A DNA stretch of 64,000 nucleotides from Scyliorhinus canicula (lineage: Eukaryota). The stretch lies in NCBI RefSeq assembly GCF_902713615.1, contig NC_052153.1, positions 139,293,879-139,357,878 on the forward strand. Reading direction: 5' to 3'. Positions 5,516 through 50,535 of this stretch are shown piece after piece. The translations under genes and the position numbers were made by a program. The notes under the pieces are model-generated. The model saw only the letters and a program-made list of their open reading frames with translations. It had not been told where the DNA came from and searched no databases. Position 1 is the stretch's first letter, and the number at the start of each line of letters is the position of its first letter.

Positions 5516-6052
5516 TTGGATTTGGATTGGATTGGATTGGATTTGTTTATTATCATGTGTACTGAGGTACAGTGAAAAGTATCTTTCTGTGAGCAGCTCA
5601 AACAGATCATTTAGTAATGAAAAGAAAATAAAATAAAAAGAAAAGACATAAAAGGGCAACACAAGGTCCACAATGTAAATACATAGACACCGGCGTCAGA
5701 TGAAGCATACAGGAGTGTACTATTAATCAGGTCAGTCCATAGGTGGGTTGTTTAGGAGTCTGGTAACAGTGGGGAAGAAGCAGTTTTTGAAACTGTTCGT
5801 GCGTGTTCTCCGACTTTTGTATCTCCTGCCCGATGGAAGAAGTTGGAAGAGTGAGAAAGCCGGGTGGGAGAGGTCTTTGATTATGCTGCCTGCTTTCCCC
5901 AGGCAGTGGGAGGTGTAGATGGATTCAATGGATGGGAGGTAGGTTTGTGTGATGGACTGGGCTGAGTTCACAACTCTCTGAAGTTTTTGCGGTCTTGGGC
6001 TGAGCAGTTGCCATACCAGGCTGCGATGCAGCCAGATAGGATGCTTTCCATA
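5516..6052 (-). mobile_element. Rex1/Babar-type LINE 3' end
   Basis: QKLQRVVNSAQSIT..DLSHPAFSLFQLLPSGRRYKS..FFPTVTRLLN; (CCAAT)n tail. Confidence 0.85.
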
Positions 6053-6668
6053 GTTCAGTAACATGGACCATGTCTGGCTCTGATCTGTGCCTGTTCACCC
6101 TGCCACAAACCTCACGGCAACCCATATTTGGTTAACCTATCTTTCAGCCACACTTTGAATTTCAGTGGCACATTTTTTGGCGTACTCCGTCAGCTGAGCT
6201 AACTCGATTGCTTTTTCCAATGTCACTTTGATCTCTGTCAAAATCTTCTTCTGGATATTAAGTTATGGATCCCACAAACCAACCGGTCGCGCAATATGCC
6301 ACTGAGCGCTGTCCCAAACTCAGGGCTCGGTAAGCTGGCGAAGCCTGGCCATGAAGGCTGAGACAGTCTCATGATGGTCCCTCATTACTTAGTTAAATTT
6401 ATAATGTTGGAGGATGATCGAGGGCGTTGGATTATCAGAAGTTTCAGCTTCCTCGCCTGATCTCATTTACGGTAAAGAAGAATCAGAGCTGTTCGATGTA
6501 CTGACTCCGTGACTCAACTGCTTGTTAAAATGGGACTAGTTTCCCAATGATAGCCATTTCCATTCATGGTTTAAATGATTCCAATCCTTGTTGGAGCTTC
6601 TCTACTTTCTCAACTGTTCCTTCCTTCCCCCCTCAATTCACGATGACTGTCGCTGCCAGAAACTTTTA

Positions 6669-6679
6669 CCTTGTCACCA
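6669..6679 (-). promoter_or_regulatory. Primer binding site (tRNA-Ser(GCU)-like, CpG-decayed)
   Basis: Minus TGGTGACAAGG next to LTR end CA; compare TGGCGACGAGG. Confidence 0.65.
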
Positions 6680-6680
6680 A

Positions 6681-7630
6681 TGTGGTGGCTCAAGATATAC
6701 ACTGGAGGTTCCAGTAATAACCAAGGGGGTTGACTGATGAAAGGCAAAGGCAGGTAGGTAACATGCACAGAACAGGAGATATCACGGACGGGATTCTCCC
6801 AAATCCCCGCGATGGCCCGACGCCAGCGTAAAAAACGGCGCAAACCACTCCGGTATCGGGCCAACTGGAAGTTACGTATTCCTCCACACCTCCGTGGGCG
6901 AAGCCTGTGGTGGAGGGGATGGTGCCATGCCAACCAGCGCTGAAGGTCTGTCACGAGTTAGCACATGCGCAGAACCGCTGTCGTGGTTCCGCGCATGCGC
7001 AGAACCGCCGGCGTATTCTTGCGCATGTGCAGGGGGTGTCTTCTCCGCACCGGTCATGGCGGAGCTCTACAGAGGCTGGTGCAGAAGGAAGGAGTCCCCC
7101 AAGGCACAGGCCCGCCCGCAGATCGTTGGCCCCCGATCGCGGGCCAGGCCACCGTGGGGGCCCGGATCCCCCCGACCCCCCGAGGATCGTAACAGCCGGT
7201 GTACCAGCCAGATCCCACCATGTGGGACCATGTCCATTTCACACCGGTGGGACTGGCCAGAAACCGATGGCCGTTCGGCCCATCGGGGCCCAGGGAATTG
7301 TCAGGCGGGCCGCTGCCAACGGTCCCAGACTGGCGTGGCGTGATCCCTGCCCCCTTCTGAAAACCGGCGCCGGAGAATGCGGCAGCCGGCGTCGAAGCGG
7401 CGGGGCGGGATTCAAGCCGTTCCCCGGGGATTTTCTGACCCAGCGGGGGTCGGAGAATCCCACTCCAGGTCTTTACACTTCAGCTTCCTGGTACACACTG
7501 CCCAGGGTCCGACTCCCAGGACTCCGCACAAAAACCCAAATGGCCAATTTTCGCAGGCTCCTGTGCGATTGGCCTTGAGTTGGTCATGCAGTCTGTGGAT
7601 CCTGCCCCCTTAAAGGAGCTACACTACCAG
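6681..7630 (-). repeat. 5' LTR of Gypsy element, split by a MITE
   Basis: Starts TGTGGTG, ends CACTACCAGA; homology to 2315-2460 resumes after the MITE. Confidence 0.7.
6786..7465. mobile_element. GC-rich PIF/Harbinger-type MITE
   Basis: TIR GGACGGGATTCTCC..GGAGAATCCCACTC; internal homology to 39162-39874. Confidence 0.85.
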
Positions 7631-27594: not shown

Positions 27595-30500
27595 GTGAGA
27601 AAGGATATTGGCTCTGAAAATGTGGAATCTGTACTGGTAGAATTGAAAAATACCAAGGGACAAAAAACTTTAGTGGGTGTCATATATAGACCCCCAAACT
27701 ACAGTGGTGAGGTTGGGAATGACATTAAACAAGAAATTAGAGATGCATGTAACAAGGGAATATTGGTAATCATGGGTGATTTTAATCTTCACATAGATTG
27801 GGCATAGCCACCACGCTGTAGAGGAGGAATTCCTGGAGTGTATACGGGATGGTTTTCTTGACCGATATGTGGAGGAACCAACTAGAGAGCAGGTCATCCT
27901 AGACTGGGTACTGTGTAATGAGAAGGGAATCATTGCCAATCTGGCTGTACAAGACCCCTTGGGGATGAGCAACCATAACATGATAGATTTTTTTATCAAG
28001 ATGGAGAGTGAAGTAGTTGATTTGGAGACTAGGGTGCTGAATCTTAATAAAGGGAACTATGAGGATATGAGGCATGAGTTGGCCTTGATAGATTGGGGAG
28101 ATTACTTAAAGGGATGACAGTGGACAGACAATGGCAAACATTCAAGGAATGCATGGAGGAACTACAGCAACAGTTCATTCCTGTCTGGCACCAAAGCAAA
28201 GGGGGTAAGAGGGCCAATCCATGGTTTACAAAGGAAATTAGAAATAGTATCCGATACAAGGAAGAAGCATAGAGATTGGCCAAGAAAAATAATGGGCGCG
28301 ATTCTCCACAAATGCGGAGAGTCGTAAAGGCTGCCGTGAAACCGGCCGTGTTTCACGGCAGCATCCGCGCCCCCTCCCGGGACCCAAATCACCCCCCCGG
28401 TCGGGGCTAGCATCGCGGCCCCGGGAAGAACGGCAGCGCGGGCTTGGCGAACGTTCGCTAAGCCCGGCCACCAAGACTCACGGCGGCTGCGCGCACGATG
28501 ACTTCAGCCGCACATGCGCGGGTTGGATGTCTCCAACCCGCGCATGCGCGGATGACGTCATCGCGCATATGCGTCAAACCCGCGCATGCGCGGACCGTCA
28601 TGCCCCTCAGCCGCCCCGTGGACTGATCCTGCGGGGCAGCGGAGGGACAAAGAGTGCGCGGGCCCATGCCACCCTTGGCACGGCCGTGCCAATCGGTGGC
28701 ATGGTTGTGCAGAACGGCACTTTGCGGCCGTTTTCACGAACTGTGATAGCAGATGTGTTTAAATTCGTGAAAACGGCCGTAAAGGACTGGGAAATCGGCC
28801 CATCGGATAGGGAGGAATCGCTGCTCGCCGTAAAAAAACAGCGAGCAGCGATTCGTGTCGTGGGGCGGCCGTGGGGTGGGGGGGGGATTGGGAGGTCGGG
28901 AAAAATGTCGGGAAGGCCCTCCCGCTATTCTCCGACCCGTCGTGGGGGGCGGAGAATCGCGCCCAATAGGTCTCAGGATTGGGAGCAGTTTAGAATTCAG
29001 CAAAGAAGGATGAAGGGATTGATTGAGAAGGGGAAAGTACAGTACAAAAGGAAGCTTGCAGGGAACATAAAGACATAAAGACTGACGCTAAGAGTTTCTA
29101 CAGATATGCGAAGAGAAAGAGATTGGTAAAGAGAAATGTAGGTCCCCTACAGACAGAAACAGGGGAATGCATAATAAGGGACAAAGAAATGGCTGAGCAA
29201 CAGTATTTTGGTTTTGTCTTCACAAATGAGGACACAAATCAGGTCCCAGAAATGTTGGAGAATGAAAGGTTTAGTGAGAGGGAAGAACTGAGGGAGACAA
29301 CATTAGTAGAGAAATGGTGCTGGGAAAACTGATGGGATTGAAGGCGGATAAATCCCCAGGGCCTGAGAATCTGCATCCCAGAGTGCTTAAGTAGGTGGCT
29401 CTAGAAATAGTGGGTGCACTGATGGTCATCTTCCAGAATTCTACAGACTCTAGAACTGTCCTGCAGATTGGAAGGTAGCTCATGTCATCCCGATATTCAA
29501 AAGGGAGGTTAATTAAAACGCATGGGATTGGGGGAAATGTATTGAGGTGAATAGAAGACTGGTTGGCAGAGTGGAAACAAAGAGTAGGGATTAATGTGTC
29601 CTTTTCAAATTGGCAGGCAGTAACTAATAGGGTACCACAGGGATCGATGCTGGGACCCCAGCTATTCACAATATATATTAATGATTTGGATGAGGGTATA
29701 AAATGTAACATCTCAAAGCTTGCAGTTGATACCAAATTAGGTGGGAGGGTGAATTGTGACGAGGATGCAGGGGTCCTACAGCAAGATCTGAACAGGTTGG
29801 GTGAGTGGGCAAATGAATGGCAGATGCAGTATAATTTGGATAAGTGTGAGGTTATTGACTTTGGAAGCAAAAACAGGAAGGCAAATTACTATCTGAATGG
29901 TTGTAAATTGGGAGAGGGGAGTGTGCAGCGGGACCTGGGTGTCCTTGTGCACCATTTGCTGAAGGTAAGCATGCAGGTGCGACAGGCGGTAAAGAAGGCT
30001 AACGGTATGTTGGCCTTCATTGCAAGAGGTTTCGAGTACAGAAGCGGTGATGTGTTGCTGCAATTGTACAGGGCCTTGGTGAGACCACGCTTGGAGTATT
30101 ATGTGCAGTTTTGGTCTCCTACTCTGAGGAAGGATGTTCTTGTTCTTGAGGGAGTGCAGCAAAGGTTTACCAGACTGATTCCAGGGATGGCGGGACTGTC
30201 ATATGAGGAGAGATTGACTAGGTTGGGATTGTTCTCGCTGGAGTTCAGAAGAATATGGGGGGATCTCATAGAGACTTATATAATTCTAACAGGACTAGAC
30301 AGGGTGGATGCAGATGTTACCAATGGTGGCTCTGTCCAGAACCAGGGGTCACAGTCTGAGGATCCAGGGTAAACCATTTCGGACAGAGATAAGGAGACAT
30401 TTCTTCACGCAAAGAGTGGTGAGTCTATGGAATTCATTACCACAGAAAGTAGTTGATGCTAAAACTTTGAATATATTCACGAGGAGTCTGGAAATAGCAC

Positions 30501-40345: not shown

Positions 40346-40498
40346 CTGGAAGGTTGATAGTAGTTTTAAAAACCCTGCATATTCATACTGAACCATCCTT
40401 CTGTAAGAATGGGACGATTGGCGTTGCCCAATCATCGTGGTAATAGGCTCAGTGACTCCTTTCTTCAGTAGCCTCTCGAGTTCTTCTTCCACTTTAGG

Positions 40499-40848
40499 TC
40501 ATAGAATCATAGATCCCTACAGTCCAGAAGGAGGCCATTCAACCCATCGAGTCTGCACCAGCTCTTGGAAAGAGCACTCTACCTAAGCTTAAGCCCACGC
40601 CTCCACCGCATCCTGGTAACCCAGTAAGCCCACCTAACCTTTTTGGACAATAAGGGGAAATTCAGCATGGCCAATTCACCTAACCTGCACATCTTTGAGT
40701 TTGTGGGAGGAAACTGGAGCCCCGAAGGAAACCCACGCAGACACAGGGAGAAAGTGCAAACTCCACAGACAGTCACCCGAGGCCGGAATTGAACCTAGGT
40801 CCCTGGAGCTGTGAGGCAGCAGTGCTAACCACTGTGCCACCATGCCGC
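40499..40848 (-). mobile_element. HE1-type V-SINE
   Basis: Full-length. Confidence 0.9.
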
Positions 40849-41197
40849 CAAATAACATAGGCACGCTATCTGCCGTTATCTTAAGTTTCACATCAATCCC
40901 AGTCATGGATCCAAGAGACTCTTTGCATGCTTACCTTGCATTACCTTTGCAGCTTTCTCAGAAGTGGTTGATGATTGTTTGTAGAATTAACAAATTGGTT
41001 CGTAGCATCCCAGTTTAGCTGAATCTTCGTTAACCAAGATCCACCAAACATTGCTGGAAAGTTCGCTTGAACAATGTGAAGAGGGACCTCAACTTTCTAC
41101 TTGTTAATTCCCACAGTCACCTTGATCAAGCCCTTCGTCGGCACGACTCCCTTGGTATAATTTCTGAAGAAAACATCAGGGTAGCTCGGTAGCACAA

Positions 41198-41510
41198 GGG
41201 CGGAATGGTAGCACAGTGGTTATCACTGTTGCTTCACAGCGCCAGGGTCCCAGGTTCAATTCCCGGCTTGGTTCACTGTTTGTGCGGAGTCGGTTCATTT
41301 TACCTGTGTCTGCATGGGTTTCCTCCGGATGCTCCGTTTCTTCCCACAAGTCCCAAAAAACATGCTTTTAGGTAAATTGGATATTCTGAATTCTCCCTCA
41401 GTGAACCGGAACCGGTACAGGTGCCGTAATGTGGCGATTAGGGGAATTGCATAGTAACTTTATTGCAGTGTTAATATAAGCCTACTTGTGACAATATAAA
41501 GATTATAATA
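41198..41510 (+). mobile_element. V-SINE head + tail 2
   Basis: Head, V core, AAGCCTACTTGTGACAATATAAAGATTAT. Confidence 0.88.
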
Positions 41511-41880
41511 GTTGTATTGGCAGATAATCAATTTCTGAAGGCATATTAATTCAGTTATAAGTGATACTGCAGCACCCATATCCATCTCGATAATATTCCC
41601 ATTTAATTTTTGATAGACCCAAAATCGTTGCCTGTCTCCTTGTACTGCTAAAACGTCAAGCTTACATTCCTGAAGCTGACTTGACACTTGGATACTCAGT
41701 GAGTCTTCAGTTGGATCACTTAATTGGTAAACTCGCCCTGTAGACTTTGCAGTATATTTCGTGGTACACGTCTTTTGTGCTGATGCAGGTTGGTGTGACC
41801 AACATGCCTTTGCAATGTGACCAACTTTACCACAATTTTTGTATTTCTTCTTGCTCTAACAATCTCTACCCCTCTAACAA

Positions 41881-42250
41881 GGGGCAGCACGGTAGCATTG
41901 TGGTTAGCACAATCGCTTCACAGCTCCAGGGTCCCAGGTTCGATTCCGGCTTGGGTCACTGTCTGTGCGGAGTCTGCACATCCTCCCCGTGTGTGCGTGG
42001 GTTTCCTCCGGGTGCTCCGGTTTCCTCCCACAGTCCAAAAATGTGCAGGTTAGGTGGATTGGCCATGATAAATTGCCCTTAGTGTCAAAAATTTCCCTTA
42101 GTGTCAAAAAAATTGCCCTTAGTGTTGGATGGGGTTACTGGATTATGGGGATAGGGTGGAGGTGTTAACCTTGGGTAGGGTGCTCTGTCCAGGAGCCGGT
42201 GCAGACTCGATGGGCCGAATGGCCTCCTTCTGCACTGTAAATTCTATGTA
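41881..42250 (+). mobile_element. HE1-type V-SINE, young
   Basis: Full-length; internal AAATTGCCCTTAGTGT present three times. Confidence 0.93.
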
Positions 42251-42877
42251 AAAAAATCTCCAACCATATGTCCCACTCGATCAGAACAATGATGTGGTAG
42301 GTTCTTAGTGAACCTGCTTTTCACAGGCGCTATCTTAGGGACTTTAGCTCAAACTCCAATCAGCGAAACATCTCTTGCAGCAAGTTCCATGTACATCGCG
42401 ATTTCTATAGCAGACTGTAGGGTTAATGCACCTTCAGTCAACAATTTCCTTTGGATGGGTTCATTCCTGAGGCCACAAATTATTAAGTCGGGAACTGTAC
42501 CATCCAAAGTCTGGCCAAATCCATAGTACTTTGCTAGCTTTTGCAGTGATGCAACAAATTATGAAAAGTTTTCCCCTCCCTCCTGTGCACAATTGTGAAA
42601 GCGGAACCTTTCAGCTATTAGTAATGGACAGGGAGAGAAATGTTCTTGCAAGACAGTCATTATCTCATCATATGACTTGTTTCCAGGTTTAGCTGGGTGT
42701 ACTGAATTCTGTAGCAACATGAATGTTTTCCTCCCAACTGAGCTGAGAATGGTCACAGTATGCAGGTCTACTGGCATCTGAATGGCTTTAAGGAACAACT
42801 GGAACCTTCCTTCATACGAGTTCTATGTCTCCTTTTCATCAAAATTCCCTCAATGTGCCTTAATTCTGCCACTTTTT

Positions 42878-43135
42878 AAAATAATCTTTATTGTCACAGA
42901 TAGGCTTACATTAACACTGCAATGAAGTTACTGTGAAAGTCGCCACACTCAAGCTCCTGTTCGGATACACAGATGGATAATTCAGAATGTCCAATTTACC
43001 TAACAGCATGTCTTTCGGGACTTGTGAGAGGAAACTGGAGCACCCGGAGGAAACCCACGCAGACACAGTGAGAACGTGCAGACTCCACACAGACAGTGAC
43101 CCAAGCTGGGAATCGAACCTGGGACCCTGACCCTC
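42878..43135 (-). mobile_element. V-SINE head + tail 2
   Basis: Matches 34288-34575. Confidence 0.88.
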
Positions 43136-44349
43136 GAACCTAGACCGCGCTGCCAGTGCATTTTCGGATTGAGCTCCCTGATCTGTGCCACTCAGTCTTC
43201 AGCTCATCTTCCCTATCTTTATTTTCTCTCTATTTAAAGCAGACAAACTCGCAGTGCACAAACAGACTAGCTGTTTCTGCGCCCCACTATCGATTCTCGG
43301 GCAGTAGGTTACGGAACTGGCAGCCCTGTAGGTTTGTATTCTTGCAGCGCGTTTCAGTGCCTCATACACAATCTCCGCAGCTCGAACCACTACAGCGATA
43401 AGTATACTGAAAACTTTGCTCCTTTATTGAAGCCTCCAGTAATTCGCAGTTGCCCGATAGCTTTTTTATTGAAAACCCTTTTACTTGCATCGAGCAGCTG
43501 TCGCGATTGAACAGCTGATTTGCCAAGCCTACTACAAACTGTACCGTGTCCGAATGTTTATCTGAGAGTTGTTTTTACTGCACATTGATGATTTCACCTT
43601 GGAAGTCAACGCTATTTCTCCCATGGTGTATGGGCCTAGATCTTCATCGATGATTCCTTCTTCTGGCTCACAAAACCGTTGTCAAAAGTTGTTCTTCTCC
43701 TGTTCTTCTTTTACGGCCCAGATCTCATCGCCAGTTTCGCTGTTATGTTCTTTGTTGCAGCCACAAAGAGGAAGGATCTGAGGTGGCACATGTTGAGCTT
43801 GTATAACATGGTGCAAGGCGTTTATTTACAAGGTGCTGGTCAAACAGGGTACAATGGTGAATGCCACAAAAGCCCGTGAAATGCTCTGATAATGACATTA
43901 TATAAGATGTGACATTACACCAGCCAATGGTGTATACTGATACAGAAGAAAAGCATACTGATCAAGAAATATTTCCTGAACACATTTTTAAAATTCCTTT
44001 CCTTTTTCTTCCTTTTATTACTGAGCCAGGCTATTTTAGGATAATTGGTGCCCTCCATTATAACTACTCCATAGTTTTGCACCTCTCTGAAATTTCATGC
44101 AATTCACCGGTCCGGTCCCAATGATGAGTTCTGGATCTCACCCAAAAATGTCGAGAAGATCATTAACCCTCATTTTCATTCATTTCCATCTCATTAGTGA
44201 GATTGAAGTGGAATGCAGCAGCCTCCTGGAAATTACCTGACTTGCCAGTGAGAAATGTGCGGCTTCTAAGGGGAAATGAGGCGAGTAGCCATTTCCATTT
44301 TCCGGCTTTTAGCTCAAGGGCACCGGAGCAGGTGGTTTGAAAATGGCCA

Positions 44350-44690
44350 ATACAGATGCCAGGGTGCCCAGAACAAAGCCACAAAAAAAGGAACCCACAA
44401 AAAAATGCCAAAAACAGGATTTTGGGGGGTGGGAGAAGAAGGGGGGGGGGGGGGGGTATAGGCCAAACGACAAAAGGGGGTGAAAGGAAGGGGAGGGCAC
44501 TGCTCACATGTAAATAGCATATAACCGCCCACTGTACAGTAAGGAAAGGAGCCTGAAGCAACAAGTGGAAGGGGTGGGCAGAGGAGGTACTGGGACAGAT
44601 TTATATTGTACATTATAACTGATGCATTTATCCTGACCAAATGTACAATGTATAAAATGTAAAAACTGCAATAAAAACATTTTGAAAAAT
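44350..44690 (+). mobile_element. L1-like 3' UTR fragment
   Basis: G-rich tract then TGTAAAAACTGCAATAAAAACATTTTGAAAAA; absent from the right arm. Confidence 0.5.
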
Positions 44691-45005
44691 ATGTGGAGGT
44701 CCAGAACAGGGACAAGCTGCAGCCTGTCTGTCCTACCAACTAATTTCAGGACAGATCCTTGCTGTTCCTACAATGCTGAAATTCAATTTCACTCCCTTTG
44801 ACTGTGACCAGCCTCTAGCTCCACAACTGCAGGCTATTGCAAGTGAGGAATTGGCCTTGTTAGTTGTGAGAGCACTTCACAGCTGCAGCCTGTGTTTGCT
44901 GCTTGCTCCTGCTGGTGGCTGCACATGCCTGGAAACTGCTGTTGCTGTTTCCTTCCTTTTCTGCAGCTGGAAAGAAGGACAATTTTATCTAAATTTTACC
45001 TGGGT

Positions 45006-45367
45006 CCTGGAACACTGGGCTCAGGGGGACGTATATCTCCAGAAGGCAATCTGGTTTGAAGCAAGAAGACGCTGTGGAACCTGATGAGCAACATTGATCC
45101 AAATGGCCGACCTGATGACGCTGTTGAAGAAATGCTTTCACAAATTGCTGATGCTTTTGTTGCTGGAGTGGAGAGTGCTGCATGTAACTCGCACGTCACC
45201 GTGGATTAAATACACTGGAAGTCAAGGATGGTCAACTGCATCTTGAACGGCAGTGGAATATATGGATACCAGAATTTGGTTCTGGTGAGATTGAGCCGTC
45301 TGGGAGGGCCTTCACAGCTGTGGTTCCTGGATGGAGAATGGCACTGATACATGGAACAAGTAACATG
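45006..45367 (+). pseudogene. TAF12: Intronless TAF12 (TFIID subunit 12) pseudogene fragment
   Basis: PGTLGSGGRISPEGNLV*SKKTLWNLMSNIDPNGRPDDAVEEMLSQIADAFVAGVESAAC/LARHRGLNTLEVKDGQLHLERQWNIWIPEFGSGEI..RMALI aligns with vertebrate TAF12 PGTPGAGGRLSPENNQVL..LEVKDVQLHLERQWNMWIPGFGSEEI..RMALI; stop 45057-59, frameshift ~45185. Confidence 0.93.
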
Positions 45368-46169
45368 TTGATGGACAGATCATTTCTACAACAAAGGTCT
45401 GGACATGATACCACATTCTCAGGTTTATCTTCCATTTCTGTTGAGGAACCTGCGAGGGGTGATACCGTGTGTTTGATGTCTTTTGTGAAAATGAGCTGAT
45501 ATAACTTTGTATTGGTACTAAAATGGAATGGTGACATTTCCCTGTTGTTTAATGGTTAGTGTGATGTGTGGAATGTTATGTAGTTGATTTTCAGATCTGT
45601 TGACCGTGTATCAAACAAAATATTCTCAACTCACAAGTTGAGGGTACATGTGTCATGCCTCAGAAGATGATTAGCACATAGAATTTCAAGGAAACTTTAA
45701 AGCCTGAACATTGTGCCTGAAATTTAGGAGCATCAGCACCACAGAGACAGCTGCCAAAAATCAGATACTGGGGACCCTCTTGTGACCAAAGGTAAGTGTG
45801 TGGATTAGGGGAGGGCACCAGCAGAAGTCTGGGATCTGGGGTCTAGGGACACAACGGGCTCACTGGATGGCACTCAGAGAAGGCAGGACAGTCATGGTAA
45901 GGGTTGGGGGTGTGGGGTGCGGGGGACGGTGACCTTGTGGGATTTGTGGGTCCTGGGATGGAAGGCCGAATGGATCATTGGTCTCTCGCTTTCGCCATTT
46001 CCTTCCAGATTAAAGAATGTTTGCTGGTGTGGATCGCGCAAAGGCTGCCTTCACGTTGCTTGTGGCAGCCGAGGTAGGCAGATGGCGGAGAAGTCGGCAG
46101 CGGCGATGATACAGACTGGAGGTGGCACCAATGTGCAGGGAACCGCCGCTCACCCTGAAGACCCGGCCG

Positions 46170-46708
46170 CCCCCGTGCACGCAGAATAGCATGCCCGACA
46201 TTTATTACCCGTGGCGATGGTGCAGAATCCTGATCCCTGGGCATCTTGATGGGCTTGGTCCAGGCCACATTTGATGTGGTCTGTTGCCCAGGCATACAGG
46301 GCATCCGTGACCTCATGGATGCACTTGTGGGCTTTGGCTTGCAATATACTGCACAAATCCCTGCTCGTGCCCTGGAATCATTTGGTGGCATATAAGTTCA
46401 GGGCTGTGATGACCTTCACAACCACTGGGAGTAGGTGCCCTCCTCTTCCACGGGGTGTTGAGATGTAATCTCCTGAGGCACATGGCTGTCCATCATCTCC
46501 TCGAACAACCAACGATACTTGTACACCTTGGGCCATCGCCGGCGTCCCCCTCCGGATCCCTCCTCTGCCTGATGGGTGGCCAGGTCTGCAGGGTGTACAG
46601 CAGCCTCCTGCGTCAACACTTCTGGCACCTTTTCTGGCGTCTGGCCACCTAGGCTGCCACCAGCGCAATGAGGGCTGCCGCTGCCAGGTCGAGAACACCA
46701 TCCATCAT
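46170..46708 (-). pseudogene. Harbinger (HARBI1-like) transposase N-terminal remnant
   Basis: WPKVYKYRWLFEEM, GGHLLPVVVKVITALNLYAT, AHKCIHEVTDALYA..DQAHQDA, VINVGHAILRA (decayed IDCTH motif). Confidence 0.85.
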
Positions 46709-47343
46709 GCTATCTATAAGGAATTGGAGAAGGGCTTCCATCCCAGGACAGATGAATCCCCCAAGTCTCCCCCACCCGTATGTGTACCACCTCCTCGAAG
46801 GGTGCCATCCACCGTGCCTGTTTTGCTGGAGACTCCTGCTCTGCACGGTCACACTCGGCCACAGCAGAAGCCCCTAGACACTAGACCACTGCCTAGAACA
46901 TTAGGGGGACTGAGCGCACGTATCCTGCTTGATCCACACACTCCCCCTCTGATCGCTGGATATCCTCAGTGCTGAAGCCAAGATCTTGGGTGTTTGATTG
47001 TTGTCTGCTGCCTCTGTGGTGCTGACGCCCTCAGGGTTAAGGTAAAGTTTCCAGGCATCGCAGGTTGATTGGAATGCTAGGCAATAACACTTGTCTGTGA
47101 CATGACACATGTACCCACAGGAATGCACTTGAGAATATCTTCTTTATTAACGGTCAACAATACCTTTATATAAAAAATATAAAAACAAACTACTTAACAG
47201 TCCACATATACATTAACCGACAAAGAAAGACAATGTGCCATTCTAAAGGCACCTTTTCACTACAGAATATCGGTACAAATACAAAGCCACAACAGTGGAT
47301 TTATACAAAGAAAACCAAATAGACATTAAACATTAAACAGTCA

Positions 47344-47551
47344 GGGGCAGCACGGTGGCGCAGTGGTTAGCACAACTGCCTCACGGCGCCGAGGTCTCAG
47401 GTTTGATCCCGGCTCTGGGTCACTGTCCGTGTGGAGTTTGCACATTCTCCCCGTGTCTGTGTGGGTTTCACCCCCACAACCCAAAGATGTGCAGGCTAGG
47501 TGGATTGGCGACACTAAATTACCCCTCAATTGGAAAACATGAATTGGGTAT
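47344..47551 (+). mobile_element. V-SINE variant (short tail) with 11-bp TSD
   Basis: TSD TTAAACAGTCA at 47333-43 and 47552-62. Confidence 0.9.
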
Positions 47552-47562
47552 TTAAACAGTCA

Positions 47563-48500
47563 ACAATACAAGGAAGTTACCAACATCCAAAGAAACCTGC
47601 CGCTCTCTCTGCCCCTCCCGCAGCTCACGGCAACGAACTCACATCAGTGGAAGGTTGCTTGGGGGTAGCGCGACAATACATCGGAAAGTCTGGACTCCAG
47701 GCCATAGAAGCATAAGGGGTTGCAGCAAATAAGCATACAGCCTCCAGGCATTAAACAGTAAACAGTAATAGTACAATAGCAAGCACACAGCTTCCTAACA
47801 TCAAGCATAAACAAGCAACAGAATGAAATGGCACCAGCAATCTGCACAGCTTCCAAACCTGAAACAATCACCAGCATAATAAAGCCACCAGCAATTTTCA
47901 AAGGTGTTTCTTCATGACCTTCAAGTTGTTCAGTTGAAGCAAGCTGCCAGCCTTCTCATCCTGTAGGATAGGCATCTGGTCACCAGCTCCACCCAGTCCT
48001 TGTTCCAGGCCATAGAAGTTAAGGAGGCGCTAGCAAGCAAACACAGAATTCCAAACATGAAACATTGCACAGTCAACAGTACAACACAAGCACCAGCAAA
48101 CTGCGAGAACAGTTCTTCATACCTCCAGCAAGTTACTCAGTGGAAGCAGCCACCACCCTTCCCCTTTGTCAGCACTGGCAGTGGTTGCACCTTACTCTCT
48201 CCGCTTCCTCACTCCAGGCAAAAGAAGCAAATGGAGGCAGCAGCAAGCAGACACACAGTTTCCAATTGTCAGCAACAGCAGTGAGTCATTCCCTCTTCTC
48301 TCTCCCCCTCTGGCAGCTATCAGCAGCAGACTCGCAAGGCAGGAACAGTCATTACCCGAAAGCCACTAACACAGAGCAGAGCAGAAGAGTGAGGTAGCAC
48401 CACTTCCTCTTCTTCAGATCAACAATAGGCCAGCCAATCTGTCCCTTGCCTGACTCCAGGGCACAGAAGCAGAAGAGACAGTAGCAAAAAACAAAATGGG
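47563..48500 (-). repeat. Four-unit degenerate repeat with variable segments
   Basis: TCCAGG(C/G)..AGAAG at 47696, 48004, 48213, 48455, each followed on plus by a CAGCAA/ACAG-rich stretch. Confidence 0.65.
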
Positions 48501-50137
48501 CCAGCATGCCCTCTGCAGCCAAAGCAGAAGCAGCCAGCACGCACACCCTACATGGCCACTTGAGAGCAGTGAAGTGCTCACATAACAAACAATGCAAATT
48601 CCTTATTAGCAAAAGCTTTCAGGTGTGCAGCTAGTGGCTGCTCACAGCCAAAGGGAGTTAAAGTGACTTTCAGTCTATAAGCCTGAAAGGGCTCTGTCCT
48701 GGAAGTGTTTGGTAGGACAAACAGGCAGCAGCTCTCATTCCCCTGTTATGGGTATACACAGTATTGGAGGATGGAGGTCTCGTAGATGCCAAGCCCCTCA
48801 CCCTCTCCCGACAGCCAGGGTGACCTTGTCCTATGACTCTCAGCCCCCCGACTAGGCCCATTCTTCCTGGGGGGGTATCCCATTCCCCAACCCCCCTCCT
48901 GAGCACTGTGGCATTCCCTCCAGTGCCCCTGGGCTGCAAGGCAGGGAATGGAAATGGCTACTCATCTTCTCAGCAGCCATTGCACCAGCTTCCTGTCCTT
49001 AAAAAGGAATGCTAAATAGTACCTGCATGACCTCTTTCTGGGGAGCAGGTTTGTTTCTGGGAGGCCATTAGATCAGGCTTACATCCCGCTAATGAAATGG
49101 AGATTGGTTTTAATTGGTGTCAATTGGTGTCTCGCCACTCTAGAGCCCATCACCGGGAGCAGGCCAGTTAGATCACAAACTGATTTCCTCCCGGCATGGA
49201 TCTTGATTTTGTCTCTCCTGCTATTTAACTGTCGCGAATTCAACACGGCCATTAAATCGCACGCTTAATATTAAATCTTCATAGAAATGGTGTGGTTAAG
49301 TATATGATCATTATACAGTTCAAAAATATTTTTTGTAAGAGATGCCTACTTTTGAACCGTGTGCTCTTGAGACTCCCTTACATGTTAAAAAGATTTGTGA
49401 AAGACAAGCAAATAAATTCATCCTCTGTAAGGCAGTTAAGACACAGCATTTGTGAACAATAGTGGACTTCCCCAAGAGATACATAGGGGCATTTTTAAAA
49501 TTGGAACATCCTCTTTAGGCCAATGAGCACTTAAAACAAATGTTTATTTGGGGAAATAGCTAGTTATATAGCAGGCTTGATAAATATAAATAATGCTAAC
49601 TTATTTTTGATGAGATGGGATTACCGTGCTGAAATATGTATAAGTGAGTTTGGCCTTTTTCTGACATTGGTAAATGACACGCCTGATTCACCAGGAATTC
49701 CATTGCATTTTTGCTCATGAACTTTGTAAAGGTAACCATACTTACATTGGTATTTTTAGTCAGTGTATATCTGCTGAGTTACTAAATGAAAGGACATTTT
49801 ATGTGAAGGCTTTGGCCTGTTCTGCAACAATTATAGCCTAAGTCAAATGTATATAAAATACCATGATCATACTTGGGCACTTAAAGTCAGTTTGGATACC
49901 TGAACATATAATTCAGGATAAATTTTACATTTTTATTGATGACTAAATAGTTTTGAAGGTTTAACAGATGATTGAGAGTATACTACAAGGACATAGTACA
50001 ATTTAGGTTTAAGGTAGCATCATAATGCAAAACTCAAACAGTTTATAATCACCCAGGCCTCAAGTGAAAGTGCCCCAAGCACATTCACAGTCATATTTGT
50101 TTTTATAATATCAGATATTTGCTGTTTGATTTTGATT

Positions 50138-50535
50138 ACTCTCTGAAGTTGCTTACTCATTTTGGGATTTGATTCCATTTGTGCTAATTTTATAAGTATC
50201 TCACGACATCAGTCCTTCTCCAAGTTCGTGTCTGGATATTGGGTGCTGTTGGATTATTCAAGTGTGGTAAATATCACAGCCAAGTCTAATCCTTGCCCAA
50301 TGTCCACACATTCACATTTTTCAATGGAAATGACTCCGTGTCAACCAAGAGCTGGAACTAGCGCTAATTTTCATATTCTTTAACTGATGGACACAGGCTC
50401 TTTGTGGTTACCCTACCTCTGTTTTGGCTAGGTCAGATAGCACAGTACAGGCCATGGACTGAGCCTGGGAGTTTCCTGATATGTATGGCTCAATATCACT
50501 CTGCGCTTTGTACTTATCCAGTGAACCATCAGGAT
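50138..50535 (-). mobile_element. LF-SINE-like ancient SINE, near full length
   Basis: Minus CCTGATGGTTCACTGG..GAGCCATACATATCAGGAAACTCCCAGG..TGTGTGGACATTGGGCAAGGA..TTGGCTGTGAT..GAGTAAGCAACTTCAG collinear with the recalled LF-SINE consensus. Confidence 0.7.

Follow-up and report, generated by a model that had tools for sequence, protein, structure and literature searches.

The segment at 44149-49137 of the window (the whole 64-kb stretch of shark DNA analysed here) forms an imperfect palindrome in which two 5' halves from one PIF/Harbinger family, diverged from each other, are joined tail to tail at about 46173-46195. Judged from its sequence, it is a dead, rearranged relic of this DNA-transposon family, and both copies appear to lack the catalytic domain. 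The left copy carries a dead piece of TAF12 coding sequence, which we regard, with somewhat more confidence than doubt, as the single old cargo of one Harbinger sub-lineage that was later carried along and decayed. The divergence between the two arms is 22-35 %, and their gene structure and shared sequences are as follows.

44149-46172, plus strand: left arm, a Harbinger-family 5' half with blockwise inverted homology to 49137-46574, containing an outer region, a putative exon 1 with donor, a long first intron, an acceptor, an ATG and about 30-50 codons.
44283-44328, plus strand: conserved block starting at a decayed splice-donor-like site, GAG/GCGAGTAGCC, matching 48963-48918 at 80 %.
44688-44968, plus strand: upstream shared block of the left arm, aligned to 48765-48468 at 70 % over 300 nt (E 1e-37).
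45467-45768, plus strand: downstream shared block of the left arm, aligned to 47324-46990 at 65 %.
46001-46172, plus strand: acceptor-like site (46010), ATG (46018) and short N-terminal transposase remnant of the left arm, by direct reading; 45991-46114 aligns to 46731-46608 at 65 %.
46195-46704, minus strand: N-terminal transposase remnant of the right arm, with an ATG at 46704 and about 170 codons interrupted by stops and frameshifts.
46990-47324, minus strand: downstream shared block of the right arm, by alignment to the left arm.
48468-48765, minus strand: upstream shared block of the right arm, by alignment to the left arm.
48918-49137, minus strand: right outer region with a CCAAT-rich promoter-like stretch, a putative exon 1 and a decayed donor, aligned to 10585-10390 of the related shark locus L001 and to 44149-44328 of the left arm.

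The assignment to Harbinger is confirmed indirectly, via the proteins matched by the N-terminal transposase remnant. The right remnant ends just before the expected start of DDE_Tnp_4, and no catalytic (DDE) domain was detected in the whole 64-kb window by Pfam or by tblastn of 14 DDE_Tnp_4-type proteins. In the latter search, only 46464-46180 on the minus strand was matched, with 39-51 % identity and E-values down to 8e-21. A 75-aa piece (46153-46377, minus strand) finds proteins in which DDE_Tnp_4 directly follows the matched stretch. Among the 14 proteins matching the surviving 80-aa stretch, ten were scanned, and PF13359 lies directly after this stretch in nine of them. A word-index protein search with the transposase piece yielded no candidate.

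At the 5' side of the transposase, the left acceptor and start read ttccttccag/attaaagaATG (46010/46018; the slash marks the splice junction). The proposal that the cargo slot lies upstream of the splice acceptor preceding the transposase ATG holds as an acceptor-plus-ATG reading; in the right arm, the ATG is found at 46704 of the minus strand. The GAG/GCGAGTAGCC site probably served as the corresponding donor; by reading and alignment, the homologous donor-like site in L001 is GAG/GTGAGTAGC. Neither the short TIRs nor the 3-bp TWA duplications characteristic of PIF/Harbinger elements are clearly readable at the element ends, where the arm homology fades at about 44090-44149 and 49137-49245. 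Elements of this superfamily also have a second gene, encoding a Myb/SANT-like DNA-binding protein; the two arms here comprise 5' halves only. A segmental inverted duplication of the locus was also considered; it is improbable, as the inverted homology ends roughly where the element does. An Rfam scan of 43900-47330 gave no match. Elsewhere in the window, LINE reverse-transcriptase debris is present, with RVT_1 at 29563-30369.

The sequence shared by the arms on both sides of the slot exceeds chance by far. A stricter alignment pairs 44715-44884 of the left arm with 48733-48565 of the right upstream (78 %, E 1e-31), and 45598-45763 with 47159-46995 downstream (69 %, E 4e-12), while the wider block limits (44688-44968 with 48765-48468 and 45467-45768 with 47324-46990) were obtained with gentler scoring. 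By direct reading, all words quoted for these blocks in the initial annotation are present in both arms. The arms fail to align in three intervals: the slot holding TAF12 on the left and a tandem array on the right, 44329-44687 versus 48917-48766, and 45769-45933 versus 46989-46766. The latter two would be expected between old, indel-rich copies and, since the arms also differ there, the slot is not one special site.

The slot of the left arm contains two features.

45006-45367, plus strand: dead TAF12 coding piece, corresponding to human residues about 41-159, recognised by Pfam PF03847, alignments to human TAF12 from PDB and frame translations.
45368-45466, plus strand: stretch found in the left arm only, following the TAF12 stop position, with no counterpart in the right arm.

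That the left arm holds TAF12 coding sequence is borne out by two matches to PF03847 (45060-45206, profile positions 1-43, E 5e-10; 45188-45496, profile positions 44-68, E 4e-6) and by gap-free alignments to human TAF12 residues 60-101 and 102-159. The identity to human TAF12 is 59 of 100 residues, and the reading frame is broken by stops at 45057 and 45207 and by one frameshift near 45188-45206. The homology begins at a CCTGGA word (45006) and runs in the sense orientation, the same as that of the transposase gene. The stretch at 45368-45466 would represent about 100 nt of a truncated TAF12 3'UTR, and the entire piece (45006-45466) is flanked on both sides by element blocks common to the second arm. 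It aligns to human TAF12 over about 120 codons without interruption and is therefore intron-free. Since the TAF12 coding sequence of vertebrates is split by introns, this suggests an origin from spliced mRNA.

The reported lack of a poly(A) tail and TSD at this piece was also upheld. Neither AATAAA nor ATTAAA occurs in 45360-45620, where any 15 successive nucleotides contain at most 7 A. No credible TSD, which for a processed pseudogene would be about 7-20 bp long, was found at the TAF12 borders; the sole shared word is a 7-mer (44984 and 45424), which lies off the 3' border and of which 0.4 are expected by chance. In the rest of the 64-kb window, the right arm included, tblastn detected no TAF12.

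The right arm is filled differently between the same blocks.

47333-47562, plus strand: tRNA-derived SINE (47344-47551, about 208 bp) with an 11-bp TSD found by direct reading; about 20 other copies are present in the window.
47563-48467, minus strand: degenerate tandem array, recognised by self-matches at 65-77 % and by a unit listing.
48465-48222, 48221-48010, 48009-47749 and 47748-47563, minus strand: array units A, B, C and D/E, respectively.
Within 47871-48119, minus strand: TAF12-like stretches in units B (48119-48055) and C (47923-47871), both matching 45116-45185 of the left arm.

The SINE, with TTAAACAGTCA as its TSD on both sides, is a later insertion. All array units open with CCTGGA(G/A), and their last part resembles the end of the upstream shared block; 48491-48438, at this block end, matches 48246-48196 (E 2e-5) and 47732-47693 (E 6e-5) within the array. 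As the units are homologous to each other at 65-77 % and to the block end, the array is attributed to tandem duplication and not to distinct inserts. It is too decayed for TRF, which did not detect it. Apart from one chance-like PDB match, no similarity to host proteins was found in the right filling by Pfam or PDB. The exception, a marginal LIM-like match (E 0.01), stems from a Cys-rich ORF that overlaps the shared block and was taken as chance. The initial annotation was correct in that the contents of the arms differ between the blocks, but its description of the right filling as unrelated repeat units did not stand, as the filling consists of a SINE with TSD and an array of the element's own sequence.

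In the mechanism that we consider, each copy would have comprised an outer region resembling a promoter, followed by exon 1 with a donor, a long first intron up to the acceptor, and the ATG with the first 30-170 transposase codons. The TAF12 mRNA piece (codons about 41-161 and about 100 nt of 3'UTR) would sit in the first intron of the left copy, which tolerates insertions because it is non-coding. A Harbinger sub-lineage would have taken up TAF12 once, probably when a break in the element was filled in from a cDNA or RNA template or, less likely, by retroposition followed by trimming. The uptake would date to about the time of the last common ancestor of the two copies, after which the cargo would have been carried passively while decaying. 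At the same place in the right copy, a tandem array may have grown from the element's own sequence before the SINE inserted, and this array may still hold a remnant of the same TAF12 piece. With an assumed identity near 90 % between the live shark protein and its human counterpart, the decay of TAF12 is estimated at about 15 % per site, which would be close to half of the arm divergence of 22-35 %.

Another explanation is a one-off processed pseudogene, for which a LINE reverse transcriptase would have copied a 5'-truncated TAF12 mRNA into the Harbinger relic, and decay or a small deletion would have removed the poly(A) tail and TSD afterwards. The TAF12 piece resembles a processed pseudogene in being intron-free, 5'-truncated, dead and derived from a housekeeping gene, and its sense orientation, the RVT_1 debris at 29563-30369 in the same window and the failure of word searches and exact look-ups to find a second TAF12 copy also agree with this origin. 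However, unlike in a processed pseudogene, a poly(A) tail, a poly(A) signal such as AATAAA, an A-run and a credible TSD are all missing, and the 3' end of the piece lies inside the UTR, about 100 nt after the coding sequence. Furthermore, the decay of the copy fits the age of the arms and not a later hit, and a TAF12-like stretch is found at the same place in the right arm. A processed pseudogene is therefore considered rather unlikely. The TAF12-like stretch in the right arm also bears on the possibility that a single TAF12-bearing element gave rise to the two arms. A segment reaching from the block end into the beginning of TAF12 would then have been tandemly duplicated in the right arm and the rest of TAF12 deleted, so that the array would be decayed TAF12 cargo and no different filling. 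Outside the array, no part of the window matches units B and C better than TAF12 45116-45185 does (unit B with a score of 23 and E 2e-4, unit C with a score of 19 and E 0.016); the orientation is as expected, and 300 shuffles gave no match of this strength. Behind the stretch in unit B come 46 nt similar to 44880-44927 and then CCTGGA, as this model predicts, and the start of unit C, CCTGGAACA, is exactly the start of the TAF12 piece. On the other hand, the stretches are only 55-65 nt long. For the first approximately 95 nt of both units, from CCTGGA to the TAF12-like stretch, neither a comparison with shuffles (z -1.7 and 1.6) nor a three-way test revealed a likeness to TAF12. None was seen in unit A or in units D/E either, and a TTGCTG-rich composition may inflate the local match. 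A shared TAF12-bearing ancestor of this form is a tentative alternative, less likely than not.

The initial annotation also inferred a variable slot collecting host mRNA pieces. In the form considered here, a fixed Harbinger site would repeatedly take up such pieces, perhaps by template switching at CCTGGA, and the cargo would differ from copy to copy. The arms do differ between conserved blocks, and the TAF12 homology as well as every array unit start at CCTGGA, which occurs 5 times in about 900 bp of the array compared to about 0.2 expected. Nevertheless, the array units are homologous (65-77 %) to one another and to the upstream block end, no unit resembles a protein family or a solved protein, part of the right filling is an ordinary SINE with TSD, the arms differ in two other intervals as well, and TAF12 is the only host gene seen. 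Such a site is very improbable, and nothing here shows active recruitment of different host mRNAs by the intron. A variant in which the CCTGGA-bounded first-intron site is a recombination hot spot, where repair after excision or breakage copies in host mRNA or cDNA, appears hardly more credible; copies across the genome would then carry varied spliced fragments, with TAF12 as the amplified winner. What stands of the claim is a Harbinger with an intron-free TAF12 piece, free of poly(A) and TSD, upstream of the transposase ATG exon; the variable slot is not supported, as the only other filling available is a SINE and an array of the element's own sequence.

For the favoured single old cargo, the distribution among related copies is informative. 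About 90 kb around eight related Harbinger ORF loci, including three shark assemblies, contained no TAF12 and neither of the two shared blocks. TAF12 and the two blocks are thus regarded as a trait of this Harbinger sub-lineage. Among the eight loci, the outer region of the right arm is shared only by the second copy in L001. A second TAF12-bearing copy with the same flanks was not found by word searches, exact look-ups or in the approximately 90 kb of related loci. Word-index protein searches with two TAF12 pieces yielded no candidate, and ten ORFs of the window, including the Harbinger/TAF12 junction ORF, were absent from the protein collection in an exact look-up.

Cut-and-paste transposons of plants commonly capture host coding sequence. 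In animals this is rarely documented, the nearest example being Turmoil-1 of C. elegans, a member of the Harbinger superfamily (PMC2572040). Turmoil-1 contains fragments of the host genes rsp-2 and cpg-3 (Sela et al. 2008, PMC2572040), and according to that paper the transduplication of coding genes is otherwise unknown in animals. Its cargo lies in 760-bp terminal inverted repeats and has kept an intron (PMC2572040), and was therefore captured from genomic DNA. The shark element is likewise an animal Harbinger-superfamily element with a fragment of a host protein-coding gene. In contrast to Turmoil-1, it belongs to a vertebrate host, and its intron-free cargo occupies the first intron, on the 5' side of the transposase ATG. 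In plants, Pack-TYPE elements are known as Pack-MULE and Pack-CACTA and have been searched for in Harbinger-PIF; they are defined as short and non-autonomous with intact TIRs and TSDs, and usually carry genomic fragments (PMC8903248, PMC13317346). Capture has been proposed to proceed through repair or template switching, or through co-mobilisation by copies close by (PMC8903248, PMC13317346). The shark element shares with them a host gene fragment between transposon sequences, but its cargo looks mRNA-derived with no intron kept, the carrier retains the 5' gene structure of the transposase, and no clear TIR or TSD could be read at its ends. Literature searches found no paper linking Harbinger and TAF12 and none on TAF12 exon structure or TAF12 retrocopies.

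If the single-cargo reading is true, a vertebrate Harbinger carried, and perhaps spread, a spliced piece of a host gene, which would mean that animal DNA transposons can take up mRNA-derived sequence. The locus would also offer a natural system for the capture route, with RNA- or cDNA-templated break repair on one side and retroposition on the other. Were the hot-spot reading true instead, this would be a vertebrate, RNA-fed counterpart of the plant Pack elements. The two fused 5' halves allow a TAF12-filled and an array-filled site to be compared side by side, and this comparison weighs against a variable cargo slot.

The stretch 43500-50500 contains an imperfect palindrome, as seen both by direct reading and by repeat search. 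Local BLAST of its left against its right side gave inverted matches at 44283-44328 / 48963-48918 (80%), 44715-44884 / 48733-48565 (78%, E 1e-31 within the window) and 45598-45763 / 47159-46995 (69%, E 4e-12), as well as inner matches at 45934-45967 / 46765-46732 and 45991-46093 / 46731-46629. The initial annotation had described two Harbinger arms sharing sequence on both sides of a slot with differing contents; every word it quoted occurs in the left and the right arm. The paired blocks under gentler scoring and the right-arm filling are:

44149-44253 / 49137-49033, inverted pair, outer block
44688-44968 / 48765-48468, inverted pair, upstream shared block
45467-45768 / 47324-46990, inverted pair, downstream shared block
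45991-46114 / 46731-46608, inverted pair, block at the transposase start
47344-47551, tRNA-derived SINE, flanked on both sides by TTAAACAGTCA
47563-48467, degenerate tandem array, unit length about 210-260 nt

The assignment to PIF/Harbinger was confirmed indirectly. Translated pieces around 46000-46700 had no Pfam match, and a word-index protein search with the transposase piece returned no candidates. An exhaustive HMMER search with the 75-residue piece 46153-46377(-) matched 16 proteins at E 1e-7 to 7e-4, several of them from the shark assemblies GCA_902713615.2, GCA_047496885.1 and GCA_036365525.1. PF13359 (DDE_Tnp_4), the PIF/Harbinger transposase domain, was present in 9 of the 10 matched proteins scanned with Pfam, beginning a few residues past the matched stretch, and in tblastn the matched proteins aligned to the window solely at 46464-46180(-) (39-51% identity, E down to 8e-21). 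The right arm therefore retains the start of a Harbinger transposase that ends just before the catalytic domain; no DDE domain was found anywhere in the window. The remnant covers the first ~170 codons in the right arm (ATG at 46704, minus strand) and just ~30-50 codons in the left arm (ATG at 46018, plus strand). Both abut tail to tail at ~46173-46195, with a possible short overlap where 46151-46172 resembles 46595-46574. This fusion may have arisen by deletion between two inverted neighbours or as a foldback-type derivative. A related Harbinger locus in GCA_902713615.2 (L001) likewise has two convergent transposase-like segments, separated by ~3 kb. One is an ORF at 6001-6960 (+); the other, at 10585-9940 (-), is decayed and has lost internal sequence, so that the beginning of intron 1 directly adjoins the middle of the N-terminal coding part.

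The outer region of this minus-strand copy aligns to 49137-48965 of the right arm; where it terminates, GAG/GTGAGTAGC forms a canonical splice donor. The corresponding position reads AAG/ATGAGTAGCC in the right arm (48963) and GAG/GCGAGTAGCC in the left arm (44283), and acceptor-like sites lie directly before both ATGs. Based on these signals, 44283-46010 (left) and 48963-46712 (right) probably represent the first intron of the transposase gene. The shared blocks and the slot would then be intron sequence, which agrees with the earlier placement of the slot upstream of the acceptor preceding the transposase ATG.

The left slot does hold TAF12 coding sequence, as had been proposed. Searched separately and without a joined model, 45060-45206 corresponds to positions 1-43 of the PF03847 profile and to human TAF12 residues 60-101, and 45188-45496 to profile positions 44-68 and residues 102-159. 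Upstream of 45060, the frame translates from 45006 as P-G-T...G-G-R-I-S-P-E-G-N, which we take to be human TAF12 residues 41-55. The copy comprises ~120 uninterrupted codons and runs ~100 nt beyond the stop position; the downstream shared block then starts at 45467. The TAF12 piece carries two stops, at 45057 and 45207, and a single frameshift near 45188-45206. The vertebrate TAF12 gene has introns within this coding stretch. Between the copy and human TAF12, 59 of 100 aligned residues are identical. Assuming that the live shark protein is ~90% identical to the human one, the copy has decayed by ~15% per site. This is about half of the arm-arm divergence of 22-35%, and the cargo would therefore be about as old as the last common ancestor of the arms and not a late arrival.

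The arms do differ between the shared blocks, but the differences are not confined to this interval. Besides the slot (44969-45466 vs 48467-47325), the arms lack alignment in 44329-44687 vs 48917-48766 and in 45769-45933 vs 46989-46766, so the slot is one of three such intervals and not a unique one. More than half of either arm lacks a recognisable partner sequence on the other side, a pattern typical of old, indel-rich copies. The left-only interval 44329-44687 contains 16 consecutive G (44441-44456), stretches rich in A and, ~30 nt before the shared block, an AATAAA within its AT-rich end; it matched no protein or RNA family, has no further copy within the window and could be another insertion.

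The right filling had been described as unrelated repeat units; it consists instead of the SINE and an array whose units repeat the end of the upstream block. The SINE, flanked by the same sequence on both sides, is an ordinary later insertion and the sole part of the region with further copies in the window, where a dense cluster of its family lies at 40490-43140 in direct and inverted orientation, with many inverted pairs of 40-110 nt. The junction of the upstream block with the first unit (48491-48438) recurs at 48246-48196 (E 2e-5) and 47732-47693 (E 6e-5), indicating that the array grew from the element's own sequence; units B and C are 65% alike over ~200 nt. ORFs in the array matched neither a Pfam family nor, credibly, any PDB entry. 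A Cys-rich ORF at 48355-48612(-), overlapping the upstream block, had a marginal PDB LIM-domain match (E 0.01) and none in Pfam, and was taken as chance.

The array may itself be decayed TAF12, although this is less likely than not. Outside the array, units B and C both match best to TAF12 at 45116-45185, oriented as homologous arms would be (unit B, score 23, E 2e-4; unit C, score 19, E 0.016); their next best matches across 128 kb scored 16, and 0 of 300 dinucleotide shuffles reached the TAF12 scores. In unit B, 46 nt similar to 44880-44927 and then CCTGGA come after the TAF12-like stretch, an order that would be expected if a tandem duplication had taken in the block end together with the TAF12 front. 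Against this, units B and C showed no TAF12 likeness in the ~95 nt that separate CCTGGA from the TAF12-like stretch. The word CCTGGA marks the start of the TAF12 likeness (45006) and of each array unit, where it merely belongs to the repeat itself.

Word searches, exact look-ups and a survey of ~90 kb surrounding the ORFs of eight related Harbingers found no second copy of TAF12 or of the blocks; the survey shows that neither is a general feature of shark Harbingers. The observation itself was confirmed, and its interpretation is partly supported: a Harbinger-family element carries the TAF12 piece, but a fixed site that keeps acquiring host mRNA pieces is not supported. The best reading, which we hold with slightly better than even confidence, is that a Harbinger sub-lineage took up TAF12 cDNA once, into the first intron, and then carried the cargo passively. 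Entry may have occurred when a break in the element was repaired from a cDNA or RNA template. This is favoured over LINE-mediated retroposition because no poly(A) signal, A-run or credible flanking duplication was found at the copy's borders, as already noted initially, and its 3' end probably lies inside the 3'UTR.

No paper linking Harbinger with TAF12 was found in the literature searched. The nearest published parallel comes from C. elegans, where the Harbinger Turmoil-1 acquired fragments of rsp-2 and cpg-3 within its terminal repeats and retained an intron (PMC2572040), whereas the shark cargo is uninterrupted and lies in the putative first intron. Plant Pack-TYPE elements provide the general model (PMC8903248, PMC13317346). 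Elsewhere in the window, an ORF at 29563-30369 carries a reverse-transcriptase domain (RVT_1, E 3e-8); it is probably LINE debris and bears on TAF12 solely as a possible source of retroposition.
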